Source of the DNA: Dimorphilus gyrociliatus
Lineage: Eukaryota; Animalia; Annelida
Length of the DNA stretch: 64,000 bases
Direction: 5' to 3'
Assembly (NCBI GenBank): GCA_904063045.1
Contig: CAJFCJ010000011.1
Coordinates: 310,001-374,000, forward strand
Below the pieces are notes generated by a model. That model saw nothing but the letters and a program-made list of their open reading frames with translations. It had not been told where the DNA came from and made no database searches. The stretch's first letter is position 1. The number at the start of each line of letters is the position of its first letter. The position numbers and the translations under genes were made by a program. Shown in pieces: positions 5,406 to 28,184 of the stretch.

Positions 5406-5491
5406 GTCTCCGTGGCGCAATGGATAGCGCGTCGGACTTCTAGTGGGCTTAGGCAATTCGGAGGCTGTGGGTTCGAGTCCCACCGGAGATG
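5406..5491 (+). tRNA. tRNA-Arg-TCT: tRNA-Arg(TCT) with 13-nt intron (5443-5455)
   Basis: Cloverleaf: acceptor GTCTCCG/CGGAGAT, D arm GCGC/GCGC, anticodon loop CT-TCT-A then intron GTGGGCTTAGGCA, T arm GTGGG-TTCGAGT-CCCAC. An oligo-T terminator follows. Confidence 0.95.
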
Positions 5492-13960: not shown

Positions 13961-16255
13961 TTACTCCCTTATCTTTTTTCCCTTAGATTTCTTAGATTTT
14001 CTTTTCCTCTTATCCCTGTCAACTGCTATAAGGCCTTGGTGGTGAAGTTGACGATGCATTTTATTGGCCTTTGTTAGTGTATTTAGAAATATCTTATCAC
14101 CCTTAGTATTTGGAAGTGGCGGAGCGACATCTTTTTCTGATGCTTTTAAACGAAGTGTTCTCCTACCAATTGAGCTATCAGAGCTTTGACTTTCTGTATC
14201 AACTGTCGACTTTTTTGGAGCGACTGGAATTAAATTGAACGCCAGCTCTTTGTGAATATCTCTCCTGACAGCCCCCGTACCGCTATAAGCCGATCTATCT
14301 ATTCTTGTCTGGGCGTTTCTTTGTGCTGTTTTTGTCCTTTCAAACTCGAAAACAGCGGCTTCTCTTGCAGCTGTAGCACTCCTCGTTGTTCGCCTTACAG
14401 GAGTTTGTCTCCTGCGGCTTTTACTTTCTCTTAATTCGTACGGTTCTGTTGATAGGCTTAAACTTTCTAGTAATTCTTGAGTTTGATTTTCTAAATTTTT
14501 CGATTCCTTTCGACGTTTGTTTGAGATATTTTCATTCGATGAATACGTATCCTCTTCATATAATACAGCAGCAGACTCAGCTAAAGGAGGAACTTGTTTA
14601 ACGGAATTCTTGCTGGGTGGAGGATTAGATTCTGGAGGAGATTGCCCTAATGAGCTTAATATCTCGTGCACATCGGCTTGTTCCACTACATTAAATCCTA
14701 AATCTTGACTATTTTCCACCTCTTCGATTCCACCTTCCTCTTTCTCTTCCTTCGTATGGGTGGCTATATGAGCTTGTAAATCTTCAGTAGTCCAAAATCT
14801 TCTTGAACACATGGTACATTTATTTTGTATATGTTTATTATGAATTAGTAAGTGCTCGTGGAGATGATGGGATCTGGCAAATTTCTTATCGCATTGTGGG
14901 CATTTAAGGGCGTCGTCCGAGTGAATTTTTAAATGATTCTTTAAATCGTAACGGTGTCGATATTTTTTGCCGCAAACAGCACATTGATAATTTGCTCCTG
15001 ATTTATGTGTGTCTGTATGCCTCTTAAGAGCGGAAGGTCTTAAGAATTCTTTGTTACATTCCGTACAGGTATATAATTTTTTCTGACGATTTTCCTTCTT
15101 CTTATTTGATTCATCTGCCGCTCCCTCTTGATGACGAATTAGATGCTTATCCAACGATCTTGTTGTTTTAAAAGGTTTCTTGCAAACAGGGCATGTAGGC
15201 CTCGGTGCGTTGCTATGATCATCTTGAACATGTCTTCGTAATGCCCGCTCGTGTTTGTATCGATTCTTACATAATTTACATGCATAACGCCTTACATCAG
15301 AGTGCGTGTCTTCATGCTCTCGCAGTTTGTTCATTGAGACAAATTTTTTATGGCAAACTGAACAGGTGGGAACTTCTTCGCCACGATGTAATTTAGAATG
15401 AAAAGCTAAGGCTCTCTTTCTTCTGAATCTCTCACCGCATTCTCCACATTCGTAGATAGCAGCAGTGTTATGCACATCCATATGATAGGCTAAAAGTGAT
15501 GGACTAGCAAATCTCTTGTGGCAGACGCTACACGCGTAAACAGTTTTTCCACCATGCTCCACGTGTTCGTGAGCCCTTAAGGAGCGTTCGTGCTTATATT
15601 TTTTACCGCACATTACGCAAGCGAAGGCGGCTCTCGACGAATGTACGTGCATATGGACGGCTAACCGTGAGGCTATTAGAAAAATCTTGCCGCACTTCGG
15701 ACAACGATGACATCGTTCGCCCGTATGAATTCTTTCGTGCATTCTCATATACATTTTACTCTTAAAGCACTTTCGACAGTGTTTACATTCGAATTCTGGT
15801 ATACTGGAATGGCTAGCTAGATGAGTACGAAGGTAATTAGTCGTTGTGAATACTCCTCTACACACGGGACAGGTATGCAGTCCTATGCCCGTATGCAGTT
15901 TCATATGCTGGGTATGCGATGTTTTTTGCCTGAACGATTTACCACATTCACGGCATTTATAACGAGGCGTCGAAGCGTGCGTGTCCATATGGCGTGTTAA
16001 CAGGGAGGGAGTCGTACATTTTCTGCCGCAAATCTTACAAACGTGTAATCCCAAATTCTTGTGCATTTTCATATGTCCAACAAGATTGCTCTGCCATCTA
16101 TAAACCCTTTTACATATTTTACATTTATATTGAGCTTCCCCATGTTTGCACTGATGCCTTTCTAAACTGCTTGCAGATTTAAAGCTCGTATCGCATATGT
16201 CACAGGTGAATGATTTGTTTCCAAGTCTGGATTTTCCGTCTTCTTCGCTCATCAC
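13961..16255 (-). CDS. Intronless C2H2 zinc-finger protein with 17 fingers and a basic C-terminal tail
   Basis: 764 aa ORF; I count 17 C-x2-C...H-x3/4-H repeats. Confidence 0.92.
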   Translation of the reverse strand: MMSEEDGKSRLGNKSFTCDICDTSFKSASSLERHQCKHGEAQYKCKICKRVYRWQSNLVGHMKMHKNLGLHVCKICGRKCTTPSLLTRHMDTHASTPRYKCRECGKSFRQKTSHTQHMKLHTGIGLHTCPVCRGVFTTTNYLRTHLASHSSIPEFECKHCRKCFKSKMYMRMHERIHTGERCHRCPKCGKIFLIASRLAVHMHVHSSRAAFACVMCGKKYKHERSLRAHEHVEHGGKTVYACSVCHKRFASPSLLAYHMDVHNTAAIYECGECGERFRRKRALAFHSKLHRGEEVPTCSVCHKKFVSMNKLREHEDTHSDVRRYACKLCKNRYKHERALRRHVQDDHSNAPRPTCPVCKKPFKTTRSLDKHLIRHQEGAADESNKKKENRQKKLYTCTECNKEFLRPSALKRHTDTHKSGANYQCAVCGKKYRHRYDLKNHLKIHSDDALKCPQCDKKFARSHHLHEHLLIHNKHIQNKCTMCSRRFWTTEDLQAHIATHTKEEKEEGGIEEVENSQDLGFNVVEQADVHEILSSLGQSPPESNPPPSKNSVKQVPPLAESAAVLYEEDTYSSNENISNKRRKESKNLENQTQELLESLSLSTEPYELRESKSRRRQTPVRRTTRSATAAREAAVFEFERTKTAQRNAQTRIDRSAYSGTGAVRRDIHKELAFNLIPVAPKKSTVDTESQSSDSSIGRRTLRLKASEKDVAPPLPNTKGDKIFLNTLTKANKMHRQLHHQGLIAVDRDKRKRKSKKSKGKKIRE

Positions 16256-17392: not shown

Positions 17393-18977
17393 ATGGATAA
17401 GACGGTTAGTGCAGAAAAAAGAGGATCTTTACATGATCTATTAGCAACTGTTGTTGAAGTTCATAAGAAAGATATTAATGATTATACGTGGGGTCATCTA
17501 AATGAAGCTAATTTACCTAAAATAGGGTGGAAGTCAAGTCATGTTGAATGGCATGGCTCAAAAACACCAAGAAGCCGACCTCTCAAAAGTCGACAAACTA
17601 TTACTCCAATTCAACCGAGAAAGCCAAAAACAACGGATGAAATGAAAGATTCCGTTATGGCTTTTAGTGTTGGTACAAACGGAGCTCTAAGTCTTAAAAA
17701 AGACAAAGAAACTCTAGCTTCAAATTCGGCAACTAAAGGAAAGGTTCTAGTCGAGGAATTGCCCTCTAGACTAATACATCATTGTATTCCATCAGTGGAT
17801 GGTATAGCTTTCACAAAAAAGGAACAATACGATCAACTACGTAGTTTCGAAGAAAATGTCCTTAAAAAGAGCCAACTGCTAGAAAAGAAAATTCTTAGCG
17901 GCGTAGCTACAGTCGAACCTCATGAACATAACCTTCAGTTAGAATTGAAAGAATTGAACGAAATTGGTGCTGGCGCTGGAACAAATCTAATTAAACTGCA
18001 AACATATGCTAATACTTTTCACGATCTTGCTGAAGATGCTAATATATTTGGTCATCTATTTAGGACAATAAAGGAAGAATACGATAGTTATTTGCAATGG
18101 TTGTTAGAGACTCATACTACTCGAATTCCAATTCTACAACAACAAGTTTGTAGAATAATTACCTAATTGACGTATTAAGTTTAATTAACGTGTGTTGATA
18201 ATTTAGATGAGAAATTTAGAAGAAAGGGAAACTTCAAGACCAAGTCGTTTAAAAGAAGAAGAAGATCGAGTGAAAAATCTTGAAGACAAAGCCGAAAAAA
18301 TACTGGAAGAAAACGAAAATCTCAGAGCAGAACTTCGAAAAGAAGAATTACTGTTATGCCAATTGGAAAACAGTAATTACATTATTCATTATATTTATTT
18401 ATACCTTCATCTAACTTGGAAGTATTCTTTCTTTTAAGCTGAACCTGTCAAGGCAACAACGAAATTCATCCCTAAGACCTCATCGGAACAAGTTGAATCG
18501 CTTAGGGTCTCTATATGGGAAAAAATAGATGATATAGAAAATATTCGCAAAGATCTCAATTCGAATTACGTTCCAATATCAGTTTGTACCTATTTGGAAC
18601 AGTGTTTGAAAGATACGGAAGTCTGTATAATAGTTAATTTCATAATCGCTTAAATAATCCCTCTTAATCTTTAGGTAAACATTCAAAAATTGTCTGGTGA
18701 ACGAGATTACTTTGTGAGAAATGTCACTGAATTAGAGATGGAGCTTCAAAACGCAATAAGCATGGCGGATACAACTGAAAAGGACGCAAAGTTTGTAGCA
18801 TTGACTTTAAGATTATATTAAATTAACTTTTAATCATATACGTTTCGCTTAAAAAGGAGAGTCTGGAGGAAAATAAGGGCTGTTAAGGCTTTAATGAGTG
18901 CAAGCGGTACAATGATTGTTGAAGATATGACGGAAGAGGAGGAAGACGAATGCAAATGGAACTGGTACATTTCCTAA
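17393..18977 (+). CDS. C6orf118-like coiled-coil protein (TSNAXIP1 N-terminal-like domain), multi-exon
   Basis: YANTFHDLAEDANIFGHLFRTIKEEYDSYL resembles the TSNAXIP1_N signature. Short GT-AG introns link coiled-coil exons to a stop at 18977. Confidence 0.55.
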
Positions 18978-19042: not shown

Positions 19043-19066
19043 TATATATATATATATATATATATA
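19043..19066. repeat. (TA)12 microsatellite
   Basis: Seen directly. Confidence 0.9.
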
Positions 19067-19758
19067 CTTCTCATCACTATAAAAGATTAATATCATTATC
19101 TAAGAAGATATCACTCTTTAAAGAAACTACATGAAAGGAGAACTTAGCATTAACATTCTTGATTGGCGTTAACAATATCTTTATCAAAGCTGAAGACTGA
19201 AATATCTATCTTTATAGTTGAAAGGTTTTTCTCATTCTATTTACTTACTTTCTGTAAATACTATATGTATTAATATACTCTATGCAGACAGATTTATACC
19301 TATATATACAATATATACTGTATATATACACACACACACACATGTATGCTATCCTTCCTATCAATCATTGATAATTTATTGCTTTAGAATTTTATATATA
19401 AAAATAGGCGTAAAACTCTCTATTATTTTCCCACGTTAATTACTTTGACTATTTCTTTCACTTTCTACTTTTAATCTTGTCTTTTGTTCTTTTATTTTTT
19501 TTAAAAAAAAAACTTTATCTTAAAAAAATTTAAGGCTTTTTTCCACCTTCCTTAGTTTTATGTAAATTAAATTATTTACTCTTTCAAATTGTATATAACT
19601 TGCTTTTTCTTTTCTACTTTTAAACAAACTATTTAAAAGTATTTATATTTCTAAGTAATACATCAGCTCATTAATCATTTTTATAATAAAATTCCTATAT
19701 TCTATATTGCACAATACGAACGAATGTCTTCTTATGTCAGTTTTGATTGTATGAAATG

Positions 19759-19847
19759 AACAGAAGCCGTGGCGTAGGGCTTGTGATTGAGTCAAAAGCA
19801 AACACATCCACAGTCAACCTTACGTCAAACTCGATACTTCTGTTTTT
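19759..19847 (+). ncRNA. Putative Pol III structured small RNA, class A copy 1
   Basis: Terminal stem AACAGAAG/CTTCTGTT, second stem GGCGTAGGG/CCTTACGTC, loop motif TTGAGTCAAAAGCAAA, TTTTT end; TTGCACAAT at 19707. Confidence 0.7.
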
Positions 19848-20040
19848 GATTTTTTTTTCTTTTTTTCTATAATATTCATTTATCATTCAATTTTCTTACA
19901 GATTTAAACTAAAATGAATGAAATATCTTTCTTCTTCGGAGAGAGAGATACATAGATAGAGAGACAATATTAATGATTTCCCTATATTGCGCAATCATTA
20001 CAAAACACGAATATATTGTAGTTTTATAAGAAAATCTATC

Positions 20041-20130
20041 AAGTGAGCCATGGCTCGGAGTTTTAGAGTTTGAGCCCGAAGCAAATTCACTATAACTCTG
20101 AGTGCTAAATTGATACTCTCTTCTCTTTTT
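20041..20130 (+). ncRNA. Putative Pol III structured small RNA, class B copy 1 (most diverged)
   Basis: Stems AAGTGAG/CTCTCTT and GCTCGGAGTT/AACTCTGAGT, loop TTGAGCCCGAAGCAAA, oligo-T end; TTGCGCAAT at 19987. Confidence 0.65.
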
Positions 20131-20470
20131 CTTTTTTTTAATATCTTTCAATGAATTAATAAACTTATCCATTAAAATTTTAACAAACAGATAAAACAGC
20201 ACAAAATGCGATTATTGTTAGAGTTTTTAATCAAATTAAAGAACAGTTAAACACCTTTTGTTTACAATTCCTATTTTTTATTTACATCTATTTCAATATT
20301 TACATAATTCATTCAACTTTAATATTTTTAAATTTCAAATGTCACGTCTGTAAATTCAAGCTACACTAGTTCCATCTGGTTGACTGCTTTCATAGTACAA
20401 TTCATATGATAATCTGTATTGCACAATATAAGAAAGTTTCTACTTATGTTGATTTTGATAGTAAAAACTC

Positions 20471-20563
20471 GACGGAAGCCGTGGCGTAGGGTTTGTGATT
20501 GAGTCGGAAGCAAACACAACAAAAATCTGTCGACTTTACGTCAAACTCGATACTTCTGTTTTT
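20471..20563 (+). ncRNA. Putative Pol III structured small RNA, class A copy 2
   Basis: Stems GACGGAAG/CTTCTGTT and GGCGTAGGG/CTTTACGTC, loop TTGAGTCGGAAGCAAA, TTTTT end; TTGCACAAT at 20419. Confidence 0.7.
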
Positions 20564-20836
20564 GATCTTTTTTTTCTTCTATGATTTCCTTCTTTAATTC
20601 ATCATTTTTCTCTTCAACTTTTCAACTGTTTTGAATTCTTTAGTGTTTATTTTACATGTATAAATGATATTTCGTTAAAAAATACATAATTTAAATGTAA
20701 TCTATATGATATTTGAAACAATTTTGTATAGCGACACTAGCCCCATCTGGTATGTTTTAGAGTTACTACAATGATTCTATTCTTGCACAATTATTGCCTG
20801 TTCAGCTTATATAGCAGTTTCTATGCGTAGAATTAC

Positions 20837-20922
20837 GGGTGAGCCGTGGCTTGGAGAATTTGAGCTTGAGCCTGAAGCAACCTCCCTCCCTCTCCGAGTT
20901 CTAATTCGACACTCACCTTTTT
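20837..20922 (+). ncRNA. Putative Pol III structured small RNA, class B copy 2
   Basis: Stems GGTGAG/CTCACC and GGCTTGGAGA/TCTCCGAGTT, loop TTGAGCCTGAAGCAA, TTTTT end; TTGCACAAT at 20783 and CTTATATAG at 20806. Confidence 0.72.
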
Positions 20923-21148
20923 GTTTTTTCAACACTTCCATTTAATTATTAGTGTTAATTTTACAAATACAAATGATATTTCGTAAAAAAAAATACATAC
21001 TTTAAGCATAAACTATAGGATATTCTAAATAATTTTTGTTGAGCAACGCTAGCACCACCTGGTATATTTTAGAATTATTATAATAATTCTTTTCTTGCAC
21101 AATCGTTACTTGATCGGCTTATATAGCATTTTCTTTGTGTAGAATTAC

Positions 21149-21239
21149 AGGTGAGCCATGGCTCGGAGAATCTGAGCTTGAGCCTGAAGCAAACTCTCTA
21201 TCTCTTCGAGTGCTAATTCGACACTCGCCTAATTTTTTT
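21149..21239 (+). ncRNA. Putative Pol III structured small RNA, class B copy 3
   Basis: Stems AGGTGAG/CTCGCCT and GCTCGGAGA/TCTTCGAGT, same loop, T7 end; TTGCACAAT at 21095 and CTTATATAG at 21118. Confidence 0.72.
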
Positions 21240-21450
21240 ATATTTGTATTTTTTTCTTTTTCTTTAGCTATTCTTCTCTTTCTTAGTTTCGTTAATAGAA
21301 AAGTATAGAGTTTTCTTAATCTTTATTTAAAAAATACTAGCCCCATCTAGTATTTTTACTGATTTTGCTTTACTCTTTAACTAGATTGCATAATCATTAC
21401 GTAATCTTTGACCATTCTGCTTATTTAGAACTTTTTAAGCGTAGAATTAC

Positions 21451-21536
21451 GGGTGAGCCATGGCTCGGAGAATTTGAGCTTGAGCCTGAAGCAATCTCTC
21501 TCCCTCTCCGAGTTCTAATTCGACACTCACTTTTTT
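21451..21536 (+). ncRNA. Putative Pol III structured small RNA, class B copy 4
   Basis: Stems GGTGAG/CTCACT and GGCTCGGAGA/TCTCCGAGTT, same loop, T6 end; TTACGTAAT at 21397. Confidence 0.72.
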
Positions 21537-21876
21537 GTTTTTTCAACACTTTCATTTTAATTATTAGTTGCTTTATATAGATATGTAACAATTAAAAGCA
21601 GAGCCACAATCGCTATATTGAGCTATACGAATACTTGTTAAGAAGTTTTTATTTGAATTTTAAAAATACTGTAAAACGACCTTTTGCACTGTTTTCAACT
21701 ATTTAAGTTTGAGCTTTAATCTGAAAATTTAGCTCTAAGATTTGCTTTAGAGTGTATAGCACTAGCTTTTATGTTTAATAGTGTCAAAAAAAAATGGAAA
21801 AAATAGAGGCAGTGTACTTTTTAATAGTTTTCTCTTTTAAAAAAATATGAATATTATTAATTTAGAAAAATACAAC

Positions 21877-21962
21877 AAAAAGGCGAGTGTCGAATTAGAA
21901 CTCGGAGAGGGAGAGAGGTTGCTTCAGGCTCAAGCTCAGATTCTCCAAGCCACGGCTCACCC
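21877..21962 (-). ncRNA. Putative Pol III structured small RNA, class B copy 5 (inverted)
   Basis: Reverse complement of a class B unit, with its upstream elements (ATTGTGCAA at 22008-22016). Confidence 0.7.
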
Positions 21963-22235
21963 GTAATTCTACGCATAGAAACTGCTATATAAGCTGAACA
22001 GGCAATAATTGTGCAAGAATAGAATCATTGTAGTAACTCTAAAACATACCAGATGGGGCTAGTGTCGCTATACAAAATTGTTTCAAATATCATATAGATT
22101 ACATTTAAATTATGTATTTTTTAACGAAATATCATTTATACATGTAAAATAAACACTAAAGAATTCAAAACAGTTGAAAAGTTGAAGAGAAAAATGATGA
22201 ATTAAAGAAGGAAATCATAGAAGAAAAAAAAGATC

Positions 22236-22328
22236 AAAAACAGAAGTATCGAGTTTGACGTAAGGTCGACAGATTTTTGTTGTGTTTGCTTCCGACTCAA
22301 TCACAAACCCTACGCCACGGCTTCCGTC
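22236..22328 (-). ncRNA. Putative Pol III structured small RNA, class A copy 3 (inverted)
   Basis: Reverse complement of class A copy 2 with one stem change (G-U to G-C); ATTGTGCAA at 22372-22380. Confidence 0.7.
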
Positions 22329-22859
22329 GAGTTTTTACTATCAAAATCAACATAAGTAGAAACTTTCTTATATTGTGCAATACAGATTATCATATGAATT
22401 GTACTATGAAAGCAGTCAACCAGATGGAACTAGTGTAGCTTGCATTTACAGACGTGACATTTGAAATTTAAAAATATTAAAGTTGAATGAATTATGTAAA
22501 TATTGAAATAGATGTAAATAAAAAATAGGAATTGTAAACAAAAGGTGTTTAACTGTTCTTTAATTTGATTAAAAACTCTAACAATAATCACATTTTGTGC
22601 TGTTTTATCTGTTTGTTAAAGTTTTGTTAAAAGGGAATTTAATAAGAGAGTTTTTGATAAGATAATTCGACTTTATTAGATGTTTCTTTATCATTTCCTC
22701 TATTATACTATTTTTTAAATATTCTTAGATTTTGAGCATTTTTCTATTGAAAGATACTATTTGGAAAGATTGTTGTTAATCTATTATTGATATGATGAAA
22801 CGATCGTTTCGAAAAGGTAGACTAGTAGAGGAGATAAGAACTTTTTTTAATCCATAGCA

Positions 22860-25337: not shown

Positions 25338-26741
25338 TCAATTAATCAATAGATTATCTTCATTGTGTTTGTTAACAGAATTCTTAGTTTCTGGATCTAT
25401 TATATCCAACATTTTAGTCAATTTTGGTATATCAATAACCATATCATTGACGTGATTTGCAGGATAGGCTTGAACCCTCCAATATTTTTGTCCAGTCAGA
25501 TCAGATATTGCCCAGAATATTGCATGCGGTAATGCGGGAATATCGTAGCCTGTCTTCGTTACGGGAACGTATTCTATCACAGCAACATCCAAAGATGCAT
25601 AATTCATGTTATAAAGAGCTCCTCCATGTGTTCCTATTATAATAGAAGTTTTAGAAAAAACCTTAATAGCTTCCTCTAAATTATATTTTGCATCGAAAAC
25701 TATTAATCTCTCTTTATATCGTGACGCCAAATAATCGATGACATTTCTTTTATTATGAATTCTTCTTCCAGGATTGACCGCACCGGCTCTTGTTAGTAAC
25801 ATGATAGTGGCTTCATTTTTAGGAACTGTTATGCGATCCGGCACTCCAAGAAATCTTCGCCCTTGTTTCCAAAGAACTGGATGAAGAGGAGGAGCTATAC
25901 AAGCGAATATAAGATAATCCGCACTATAGACAGTAACATAGTCGCTCCTTCTATGCCAAACTATTCTTTCGTTCGTTATATTAAACTTTGTCAGAAGAAG
26001 AAAAATATTTTTGTGAAAAGGTCTCTCTAGTAGAACAGTAACCTCGGGTCTCCTTAGAATTTCCCACGCTTGTACTAACTTTGGTAATGTACCGTCGTAG
26101 AAATGTTGAAATAAATAACCCATTGGGATAATCATTGGGGCTAAAATTCTATAATGTCTATTTGCTCTTCTCGTCTCACTGAAATATTCGACGTTTGATC
26201 TAAACCCGCAATCGTAAAACATTTTAAATGTTGCGTTCTTAACAACTTGAATAACACCTTTTAATTGTTCTTTAGTATTCGGTACGAAATTTCCCTTATT
26301 CCTTTCACTTTTGAAAAATAGAGTTCTATCCTCATCCGACGGGAATAACGGTTCTTTCCGTTTAAAATTCTCATAGTATAAAGTCATTAGAGGCATTTCT
26401 TCCGTTTTATACTTTCTTATACCCATATAGAAATCATATAAATTATAATAAACATTGTCATGAGATTTTTGCTTTTCAAAGTCTGTTCTATCATTAATTA
26501 AAGGTGATAAAATATTCCAATTCGGATCAAGGTGTTGTGCCTTTGTAGTTCTGATATCCATCGTTTTACTTACAGTAAATACCTCTTGTTTCGCATTTGA
26601 TTGCAGGTCAAAACTAATTTTATTAGAACTATCACCAAAAATCTTCTTATCAGTTGAATTTAAGAAAAAACAAATACCCAAAAATAAATTAATAGAGCAT
26701 AACAGTATCACACCTATCGCACATTTTCGAAAAATAGCCAT
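25338..26741 (-). CDS. Intronless type II membrane glycosyltransferase family 61 (DUF563-like)
   Basis: N-terminal TM (MAIFRKCAIGVILLCSINLFLGICFFL), YFQHFYDG, LLTRAG...RRIHN, IIIGTHGGALYNM (GT61 HG motif). ORF track starts at 26792; second Met preferred. Confidence 0.8.
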   Translation of the reverse strand: MAIFRKCAIGVILLCSINLFLGICFFLNSTDKKIFGDSSNKISFDLQSNAKQEVFTVSKTMDIRTTKAQHLDPNWNILSPLINDRTDFEKQKSHDNVYYNLYDFYMGIRKYKTEEMPLMTLYYENFKRKEPLFPSDEDRTLFFKSERNKGNFVPNTKEQLKGVIQVVKNATFKMFYDCGFRSNVEYFSETRRANRHYRILAPMIIPMGYLFQHFYDGTLPKLVQAWEILRRPEVTVLLERPFHKNIFLLLTKFNITNERIVWHRRSDYVTVYSADYLIFACIAPPLHPVLWKQGRRFLGVPDRITVPKNEATIMLLTRAGAVNPGRRIHNKRNVIDYLASRYKERLIVFDAKYNLEEAIKVFSKTSIIIGTHGGALYNMNYASLDVAVIEYVPVTKTGYDIPALPHAIFWAISDLTGQKYWRVQAYPANHVNDMVIDIPKLTKMLDIIDPETKNSVNKHNEDNLLIN

Positions 26742-28184
26742 ATCTGCATTTATAAAGGAAATATTATTATTGTACTCTAATATGGAATACATTGAAAATA
26801 CCGCTTTTAAACATATTAATATGCTGTTTCATTCATTAAATTTTATATAATAATATTGATCTACTTGCACTAGTTCCGCAGGACAGTCGATATGCCCTTT
26901 GCAATTTCCATTAAATCATTTATAGAATAAAGATGACGATGATAGCGCAAAAGTGACAGTAAACTGAGTAGTTACTAATATACTGACAACTGTTAAAAGA
27001 CAATTTTTAGATTATACCTATTCAATAATGGGAGCATTTTAGTTGTTTTTTTTAAGGAATAGCTTCTGAAAGCACCATCTAATATATCAAAGAGTTAATC
27101 AATATTATTTCAGCCATATACGTTTGTTTAAAAACTATTATTTCAAATGTTTATCAATAAGGATACAGAAATAATTATATAATAATAAAGAAGTATGATT
27201 TTTAATTAATCTGATGAAAAAATCTTTATAATTCTCGTCAAGAAATAGGTAAGCCCTTGTCACCAACCTTGAATATCGCTCAAAAAAAAGGTAAAGAAAA
27301 ATTAAGTCGTTAAATAAACAAAGAGAAATACCGGTTATTTATCCTTCCACATTTTCCAATATATAAGCTCAATATATATCAAAATATCGTGTAATCATTC
27401 CTAGTATTTTGGATGAATCTCGCATGCTTATAGAATGCTATCTGAATAACCCACCATTGTTACAGAAACGAATCTATTTACGACAAAATATAAATTGGTA
27501 AACAAAAGTGGCCGCTCAAGTTAAAGTCAAAAGTTTCGTTCATCTAATAAAACTTTTATATATGTCATCGAGTTATTCATTTTATCTAAACTTATTAAAA
27601 AGCCAAACTATTTCATTTAACTTAGCTTTTTGAAAAATTTTAGCGCTTTCTAGACATTAGTTACAATTTCTTAAGAATCTCTGCAGAGAAAATTTGAAAC
27701 AGCTTAGAAATTGTTTATATGTTAAGCTAAAAAATTATTCACCTGTATTCGTTTAGAATTAAAACAAATATTCACGATAGCTAGCATTAGATAAAAATTT
27801 TCAAAACACTAAAAACAGACAATAGATGGCGTTGGTTATTTATTTACAAGAGAATTAGTAACAAAGTGCCAAAGAAATTTTTATTAAAACTAAAATAAGT
27901 TGGAATTGAGCGAAAATTAGAAATATAAAGAGGATGGAATTGAAAAAAGAAAAGATTTTCTGCACGAAACAATACATTATTAATTGTTAAGAATGACAGG
28001 TTTGAATAGCAAAAGAGAATTACTGCCGATGGTGACCGCGGTTACTACGTTCCATCAATTTAAAATTTTCATAGCGTCTCGTTCTCTGGCAACAGCATAA
28101 TTTAACGGTTATAAAAGACAATGGTTAGCTGTAAACTTCTCAAAAGGTTTTCATTCCTTAATAACTGAAAGTGAAAACGATAAA

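Follow-up and report, generated by a model that had tools for sequence, protein, structure and literature searches.

We describe a cluster of short, structured units at positions 19758-22328 of a 64,000-nucleotide stretch of the genome of the annelid Dimorphilus gyrociliatus (contig CAJFCJ010000011.1, positions 310,001 to 374,000 of the forward strand; the whole stretch is referred to as the window), which is likely to be a real family of RNA polymerase III (Pol III) genes for a structured RNA of an undescribed kind, outside Rfam. The cluster would consist of genes for a non-coding RNA of about 85 nt, present as six independent copies of two subtypes together with two recent inverted duplicates. 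An unassignable Pol III small-RNA family had been proposed here from the letters of the window (the sequence-only reading), and promoter boxes, terminators, covariation, GC content, and a homologue in a metagenome contig (L004) all agree with that proposal.

The window is AT-rich, at about 30% GC like the genome as a whole, and the units differ from it with a GC content of 43-56%. There are eight unit bodies of 84-90 nt, numbered U1 to U8, of which U7 and U8 lie on the - strand and the other six on the +; U1, U3, and U8 form subtype A, and U2 and U4-U7 form subtype B. The apical motif GAGYCNRAAGCAA occurs eight times in the 64 kb, every time within 19789-22298, where 0.84 occurrences are expected by chance. 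The units were segmented by hand, and a covariance model (R1) was built from a gap-free alignment of the five subtype B copies only; it nonetheless recovers all three subtype A copies end to end, with expectation values (E) of 3e-7 to 6e-6, and a search of the 64 kb with this model yields no copy beyond the eight. The candidate genes and the duplication arms that hold some of them are as follows.

19758..19847, + strand: U1, candidate subtype A RNA gene (body 19758-19844 plus T run); R1 36.8 bits, E 3e-7, end to end
20040..20130, + strand: U2, divergent candidate subtype B RNA gene (body 20040-20123); R1 94 bits
20174..20925, no strand: left arm of a 752-nt inverted duplication, holding U3 and U4; 99% complementary to 21874-22625
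20471..20563, + strand: U3, candidate subtype A RNA gene (body 20471-20560), inside the left duplication arm; R1 31.9 bits, E 6e-6
20836..20922, + strand: U4, candidate subtype B RNA gene (body 20836-20919); R1 107 bits
21148..21239, + strand: U5, candidate subtype B RNA gene (body 21148-21231), with a T7 run 1 nt past the body; R1 105 bits
21450..21536, + strand: U6, candidate subtype B RNA gene (body 21450-21533); R1 108 bits
21874..22625, no strand: right arm of the inverted duplication, holding U7 and U8; contig depth about twice that of the single-copy flanks
21877..21963, - strand: U7, recent inverted copy of U4 (body 21880-21963), in the arm 21874-22625; R1 106 bits
22236..22328, - strand: U8, recent inverted copy of U3 (body 22239-22328), in the right duplication arm; R1 33.5 bits

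Because U7 and U8 are duplicates of U4 and U3 within a 752-nt inverted duplication of 99% identity, only six of the copies are independent. The claim of eight units with a common fold therefore stands as to the fold, which all eight share, but not as to the number of independent witnesses to it. U4-U6 are arranged in tandem with a spacing of 302-312 bp.

Fold and covariation of the units

All units adopt a common fold, a rod of three helices (P1, P2, and P3). P1 (7 bp) ties both ends of the RNA together and is followed by an asymmetric internal loop, with CCRU on the 5' side and 9-11 nt terminating in AAYUYGAYA on the 3' side; P2 (10 bp) then leads through a short variable joint to P3, in which 3+3 bp flank a single mismatch (GNG-N-UUG/CAA-N-CNC) beneath a 9-nt apical loop, AGYCNRAAG. 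The joint on the 3' side is variable and carries a pyrimidine tract in subtype B. By manual segmentation, U1 has 8/8 pairs in P1 and nine standard pairs in P2, and the divergent U2 has a single U-U mismatch in P1, a completely paired P3, and a T5 run 2 nt past its body. Three single-stranded elements are near-constant: AGCCRUGGC at the 5' side of the internal loop, AAYUYGAYAC at its 3' side, and the apical AGYCNRAAG. For U4 the parts lie at these positions.

20837-20843/20912-20918, + strand: P1 of U4
20848-20857/20891-20900, + strand: P2 of U4
20862-20868/20878-20884, + strand: P3 of U4
20844-20847, + strand: 5' side of the internal loop of U4
20869-20877, + strand: apical loop of U4
20901-20911, + strand: 3' side of the internal loop of U4

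In a model-guided alignment 97.6% of 207 pairing cells are standard pairs, and the proportion is 32-51% when the partner is slid by one to three columns. Changes on both sides of a pair are seen in 13 of the 23 pairs, and none of 500 shuffles reached the observed values. The stems thus vary with pairing kept while the loops are near-invariant, as the sequence-only reading had it, and its further claim that G-U pairs restrict the fold to the strand ending in oligo-T is borne out by the count: there are 31 G-U cells, and the complementary strand would pair at just 83%. Because these G-U cells cut antisense pairing to that degree, we take the selected structure to belong to the strand that ends in oligo-T, and so to RNA. 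The same reading erred at the apex, where it drew a hairpin of 4 bp with a 7-nt loop; this is unpaired in subtype A, and a covarying 3+3-bp helix with a 9-nt loop is found instead, with compensatory changes (A-U to U-A, and G-C to A-U) in that register. Within subtype B, the bodies are 71-94% identical and the flanks 51-66%, the latter being the background of AT-rich DNA.

We note that part of the 5' element, GCCRUGGC, is self-complementary, and that U5 and U6 contain a 12-nt perfect palindrome, GAGCCATGGCTC; the palindromic element lies at 20041-20052, 21149-21160, 21451-21462, and equivalent positions. Such an element could serve in RNA dimerisation or, at the level of DNA, be the target of a dimeric factor.

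Promoters, terminators, and a metagenome homologue

Upstream of the units, with distances measured from the first paired base of P1, two elements recur in all eight: a palindrome TTRCRYAAT at -52 to -54, with variants TTGCACAAT, TTGCGCAAT, and TTACGTAAT, and a TATA-like box at -27 to -30. A third, the CTAGYNCCAYCTRGT box, is present at -100 to -114 in six of the eight. On the downstream side a run of 5-7 T starts 0-4 nt past the body in 8/8 units, so that the oligo-T tail previously claimed is present throughout. Internal promoter elements are degenerate in the worm: box A has 6-7 of nine consensus letters, and all that is left of box B is a TYGA core within the conserved 3' loop. The signals are distributed as follows.

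19707..19739, + strand: U1 promoter; TTGCACAAT at -52, TATA-like TTATGTCA at -27
19987..20018, + strand: U2 promoter; TTGCGCAAT at -54, ATATATTG at -30
20366..20451, + strand: U3 promoter; CTAGTTCCATCTGGT at -106, TTGCACAAT at -53, TTATGTTG at -28
20737..20814, + strand: U4 promoter; CTAGCCCCATCTGGT at -100, TTGCACAAT at -54, TTATATAG at -30
21049..21126, + strand: U5 promoter; CTAGCACCACCTGGT at -100, TTGCACAAT at -54, TTATATAG at -30
21337..21428, + strand: U6 promoter; CTAGCCCCATCTAGT at -114, TTACGTAAT at -54, TTATTTAG at -30
21985..22062, - strand: U7 promoter, copy of the U4 promoter
22348..22433, - strand: U8 promoter, copy of the U3 promoter
20366-20380, 20737-20751, 21049-21063, 21337-21351, and copies: the CTAGYNCCAYCTRGT box at about -100, with a related box at 609-619 in L004

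With a TATA-like box and an oligo-T terminator both in place, the predicted layout is that of a Pol III gene under an upstream promoter, type 3 or mixed. The upstream regions of EBER and 7SL genes likewise pair a bZIP-type site near -50 with a TATA-like box near -28, an arrangement that differs from a SNAPc proximal sequence element (PSE), and the element at -53, being a short palindrome, is unlike known PSEs. Mixed promoters of this class, as in EBER, 7SL, and vault RNA genes, share a bZIP site (of the ATF/CRE or C/EBP type) near -50, a TATA-like box near -28, and internal elements; they differ in that the worm palindrome TTRCRYAAT is C/EBP/PAR-like rather than TGACGTCA, and in that the worm adds the box at about -100. 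This last box presumably resembles the core of the CTCF site. According to the genome paper, the CTCF motif outnumbers all others in the open promoters of D. gyrociliatus (PMC7854359).

A metagenome collection was scanned with a pattern of AGCCRTGGC, a gap, and TTGAGYCNRAAGCAA, which covers two of the three conserved elements and gave seven loci, six of them chance matches in GC-rich or coding DNA. Across the metagenome, genome, and viral collections together, 15 of the 16 pattern matches are due to chance, in bacterial coding DNA; these 15 lack the third motif, and none exceeds 13 bits with R1. A second viral scan gave no match. The remaining match is contig JAAUXW010197096.1 (L004; 1759 bp, 39% GC), which has a 128-nt homologue at 704-831. 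This carries the third motif, AACTCGACAC, which was absent from the search pattern, and its ends are complementary (GAGCGAG/CTCGCTC) at the exact position of P1; P2 also has 10 bp, with letters that differ from those of the worm (GGCGCAGTGG against CCGCTGGGCC). R1 matches the homologue end to end at 25.8 bits (E 2.5e-4), and its minimum free energy (MFE) fold, with a z-score of -4.1, regains P1 and P2 as well as the two C-G pairs of the loop.

The surroundings of the homologue also correspond. TATATAG stands at -29, and a GTTCCACATTG box lies 67 bp before it, compared with 68 bp in U4 and U5; the upstream region is identical to U3 in 16 of 23 letters at the box at about -100. The 3' end is followed by T-rich sequence, with TTT at 1 nt and TTTT at about 10 nt, and, unlike the worm units, has no run of at least 5 T. 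The 5' strand of P2 is a perfect box A, TGGCGCAGTGG (9/9), and an extra hairpin, which replaces the variable 3' joint of the worm units, holds a near-perfect box B, GTTCGAGTCC (8/9). The weak A and B boxes noted by the sequence-only reading are thus a property of the worm copies that does not extend to L004. In a literal motif search of the literature, the first 15 nt of the box A region were identical to a sequence in papers on yeast tRNA and translation; we take the stretch to be that of yeast initiator tRNA.

Since the L004 homologue exists outside this genome, the family, as delimited by these matches, is older than D. gyrociliatus. The full tRNA-type A and B boxes of L004 suggest descent from a tRNA-like Pol III gene, and the family probably began as such a gene with an internal promoter.

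Known RNA families and competing explanations

Rfam returns no family at gathering thresholds for the whole window, and none at E = 10 for the region or for single units of the worm and L004; the output at E = 10 comprises chance matches to mir-276 (in the flanks), NPPA-AS1, and AHBV epsilon. The Rfam comparison called for by the sequence-only reading thus gives no confident match to a known family.

Y RNAs and the stem-bulge RNAs of nematodes or insects (sbRNAs; RF00019 and relatives) come from Pol III genes of 80-130 nt and have ends paired in a bulged stem, a second stem of 9-10 bp above it, an interior that varies and is pyrimidine-rich in part, an oligo-U tail, and a small multi-copy cluster on both strands. 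The worm units agree in size, end pairing, and tail (bodies of 84-90 nt, a P1 of 7-8 bp, and the T5-7 run), and they could be highly diverged worm Y RNAs, with Ro60 (TROVE plus vWA domains) on the bulged terminal stem and La on the U tail. The architecture fits, at about 85 nt with paired ends, an unpaired 5' C opposite a 3-nt bulge, and a 9-10-bp upper stem, as do the pyrimidine-rich 3' loop segment of subtype B, the U tail, and the small cluster of mixed orientation (Y features PMC4726728, PMC4450293). However, the likeness is architectural only. The Ro60 motif on the 5' strand of Y RNAs is GGUCCGA in animals and GNCGAA/CGAA in bacteria and phage (PMC4201824, PMC12135203); GGUCCGA/CGAA is absent from the 5' strand in 9/9 sequences, where (G/A)AGCCRUGG is found and CGA occurs on the 3' strand only, so the sequence-only reading was right that the canonical Ro60 helix is missing. 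The upper stem of Y RNAs has a conserved (A/G)UG-CA(C/U) core, with UUAUC at the 5' end of the loop (PMC4450293); P2 here is GGCGUAGGG, GGCUYGGAGA, or GGCGCAGUGG, and both the GUG-CAC or UG-CA core and UUAUC are absent. [quoted passage not shown] The constant asymmetric loop (CCRU versus AAYUYGAYA) and the constant 9-nt apical loop are not known from Y RNAs, and the Rfam Y_RNA model is silent at E = 10, single units included. We therefore consider a Y RNA identity unlikely, though worth keeping in view.

Vault RNAs (RF00006), the Pol III-transcribed RNA part of the MVP/TEP1 vault particle, resemble the units in their size (80-150 nt), their panhandle, the clustering of their genes, and a promoter combining an upstream TATA-type box with internal A and B boxes, the latter complete in L004 (9/9 and 8/9). 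They differ in what is conserved, which here is the loops and not the promoter boxes, box B being degenerate in the worm. Annelid and mollusc vault RNAs in Rfam, those of Helobdella and Lottia included, keep a box A with TTACTTCG directly after it (PMC8824774); this signature is absent from all units and from L004, and RF00006 gives no match at gathering thresholds or at E = 10. Of the explanations considered here, that these are vault RNAs is the least probable.

The tRNA genes share with L004 the 15-nt identity, the perfect box A, and the box B (GTTCGAGTCC) in the extra hairpin, and the UUCGACA of the 3' loop is T-loop-like; there is, however, no cloverleaf, and box A, instead of belonging to a D arm, supplies the 5' strand of P2, a long-range helix. 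Neither ARAGORN nor the Rfam tRNA model has a match in the units or in L004, and their only match in the window is an unrelated tRNA at 5406-5491. Such features might still reflect a locally amplified tRNA-derived repeat, SINE- or satellite-like and without function, whose hairpins are inherited rather than selected. The tandem spacing of U4-U6 and the recent inverted duplication would suit this, as would the tRNA-like box A and box B of L004. Against it, bodies, promoter boxes, and distances are kept amid flanks that have decayed to background, 13 pairs show compensatory changes, G-U use is strand-specific, and the loops are constant in a second organism despite different stems. In the main DNA run, short contigs covering units have depths of 185 and 141, compared with 144-158 for single-copy flanks and 320-356 for the duplicated arms, and the sequence of the locus has no poly-A tails, simple-repeat tails, or target-site duplications at the units. 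With single-copy depth and with tails and target-site duplications absent, the units show no sign of being a dispersed repeat; nor did any extra copy appear in the 64 kb. A dispersed short interspersed element (SINE) or miniature inverted-repeat transposable element (MITE), the danger foreseen by the sequence-only reading, is thus not what the locus presents, since covariation is also there. We regard a functionless repeat as highly improbable.

Marginally less probable again is that the units are Pol III-driven precursors diced to microRNA (miRNA)-like or small interfering RNA-like products. P2 and P3 together do make an imperfect hairpin of about 20 bp, but the pattern of conservation is the inverse of that in a miRNA precursor, with constant loops and variable stem arms, and the sole miRNA model to match does so at chance level and in the flanks.

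Several further candidates were considered and set aside. A tRNA or tRNA-derived SINE was rejected because cloverleaf and tails are absent and contig depth is single-copy. Spliced-leader RNA, which comes from Pol II snRNA-type genes and has a donor-bearing leader exon and an Sm site, was rejected on the T-run terminator after each unit, and inspection by eye, without a pattern search, showed no Sm site; the genome paper reports no spliced leaders in D. gyrociliatus (PMC7854359). There is no tandem G-A beside the 3-nt bulge, as a kink-turn would have, and the letters do not fit a sarcin-ricin loop. The Alu domain of the signal recognition particle RNA and 5S rRNA show short similarities only, with Rfam support absent, and 7SK, U6atac, and telomerase RNA are wrong in size and motifs.

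Several observations weigh against our own reading of the cluster as an undescribed Pol III gene family. Read contigs over the cluster, from four runs, look like DNA and not RNA. Taken singly, the units give modest MFE z-scores, between -0.4 and -2.4, and U5 favors an alternative local hairpin. The alignment used for covariation was fitted to the structure, and the covariation is carried by three deep lineages only (A, B, and L004), so formal power is low; for P3, the model pairing of L004 differs from the manual alignment, and support outside the worm is weak. The units, their covarying fold, the arrangement of promoter and terminator, the lack of an Rfam match, and the L004 homologue are direct observations; Pol III transcription, protein binding, and a scaffold role are things that we infer only.

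If the cluster is such a family, a plausible mechanism is that Pol III would read each gene from its own compact promoter and would stop at the oligo-T terminator. That promoter combines the degenerate internal box A with upstream elements: a bZIP-type TTRCRYAAT site (about -53), a TATA-like box (about -29), and in most units a CTAGYNCCAYCTRGT box (about -100). The helices would serve as a frame only, their letters being free to change while pairing is kept, and the three constant single-stranded loops may be docking sites for one or more proteins. La would bind the U tail, and the RNA might act as a stable ribonucleoprotein (RNP) scaffold of the Y or vault kind. Within the proposed family, we would give roughly even chances to an RNP of its own, new in kind. 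The broader proposition, of an undescribed cross-species Pol III family of tRNA-like origin, with dedicated partners at its loops, neither Y nor vault, a third kind of small scaffold RNA, cytoplasmic or nuclear, in spiralians, seems to us evenly balanced.

Genomic setting and significance

The cluster occupies a 4.6-kb intergenic gap, with a TSNAXIP1-like gene on one side and the next genes on the other, and this intergenic region holds no credible open reading frame (ORF). The nearest ORFs with Pfam matches are TSNAXIP1-like (17393-18166, + strand), glycosyltransferase-61 (25338-26792, - strand), and a single ORF of 764 aa crowded with C2H2 zinc fingers (13961-16255, - strand). Short (AT)n and (AC)n microsatellites lie directly upstream of the cluster at 19045-19070 and 19325-19345. 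The tRNA gene at 5406-5491 (+ strand; 86 nt, Rfam tRNA 54.8 bits), unrelated to the units, is followed by a T10 run; ARAGORN gives it a four-letter anticodon, and ACTTCTA plus an insert resembles an intron-containing tRNA-Arg(UCU).

Two sequencing runs show local peculiarities at the cluster. In run X5, which carries an older species label and has low depth, a 283-nt contig fuses 19222 to 19900 and omits 677 bp with U1 and its promoter. Because its ends are not GT-AG on either strand, the junction is unlike splicing and more like an indel polymorphism or a variant of the assembly; if it is real, the copy number of the cluster differs between strains. In run X2, depth is 15-37 over the units and promoters (noted for 20852-22453) and 0 in the spacer at 21580-21890 and at 19500-19900, and one contig terminates in a Nextera adaptor at 22453. 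This run could be a tagmentation library, of the type used to assay transposase-accessible chromatin (ATAC), in which case the genes would lie in open chromatin.

Small Pol III scaffold RNAs (Y, sbRNA, and vault) are known mainly from vertebrates and nematodes. For annelids and molluscs the literature that we searched covers vault RNAs only, and we found no paper there on a Y-type or comparable RNA; the D. gyrociliatus genome paper does not treat non-coding RNAs (PMC7854359). The locus offers a low-copy, compact family with a clear fold, candidate protein-docking loops, a defined promoter, and a homologue outside the species. Its RNAs may be the missing Ro60 partner of spiralians, or may belong to a new RNP. 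The family may also record a promoter shift within a single kind of RNA, from an internal promoter with full A and B boxes, as in L004, to a mostly upstream one, as in the worm.

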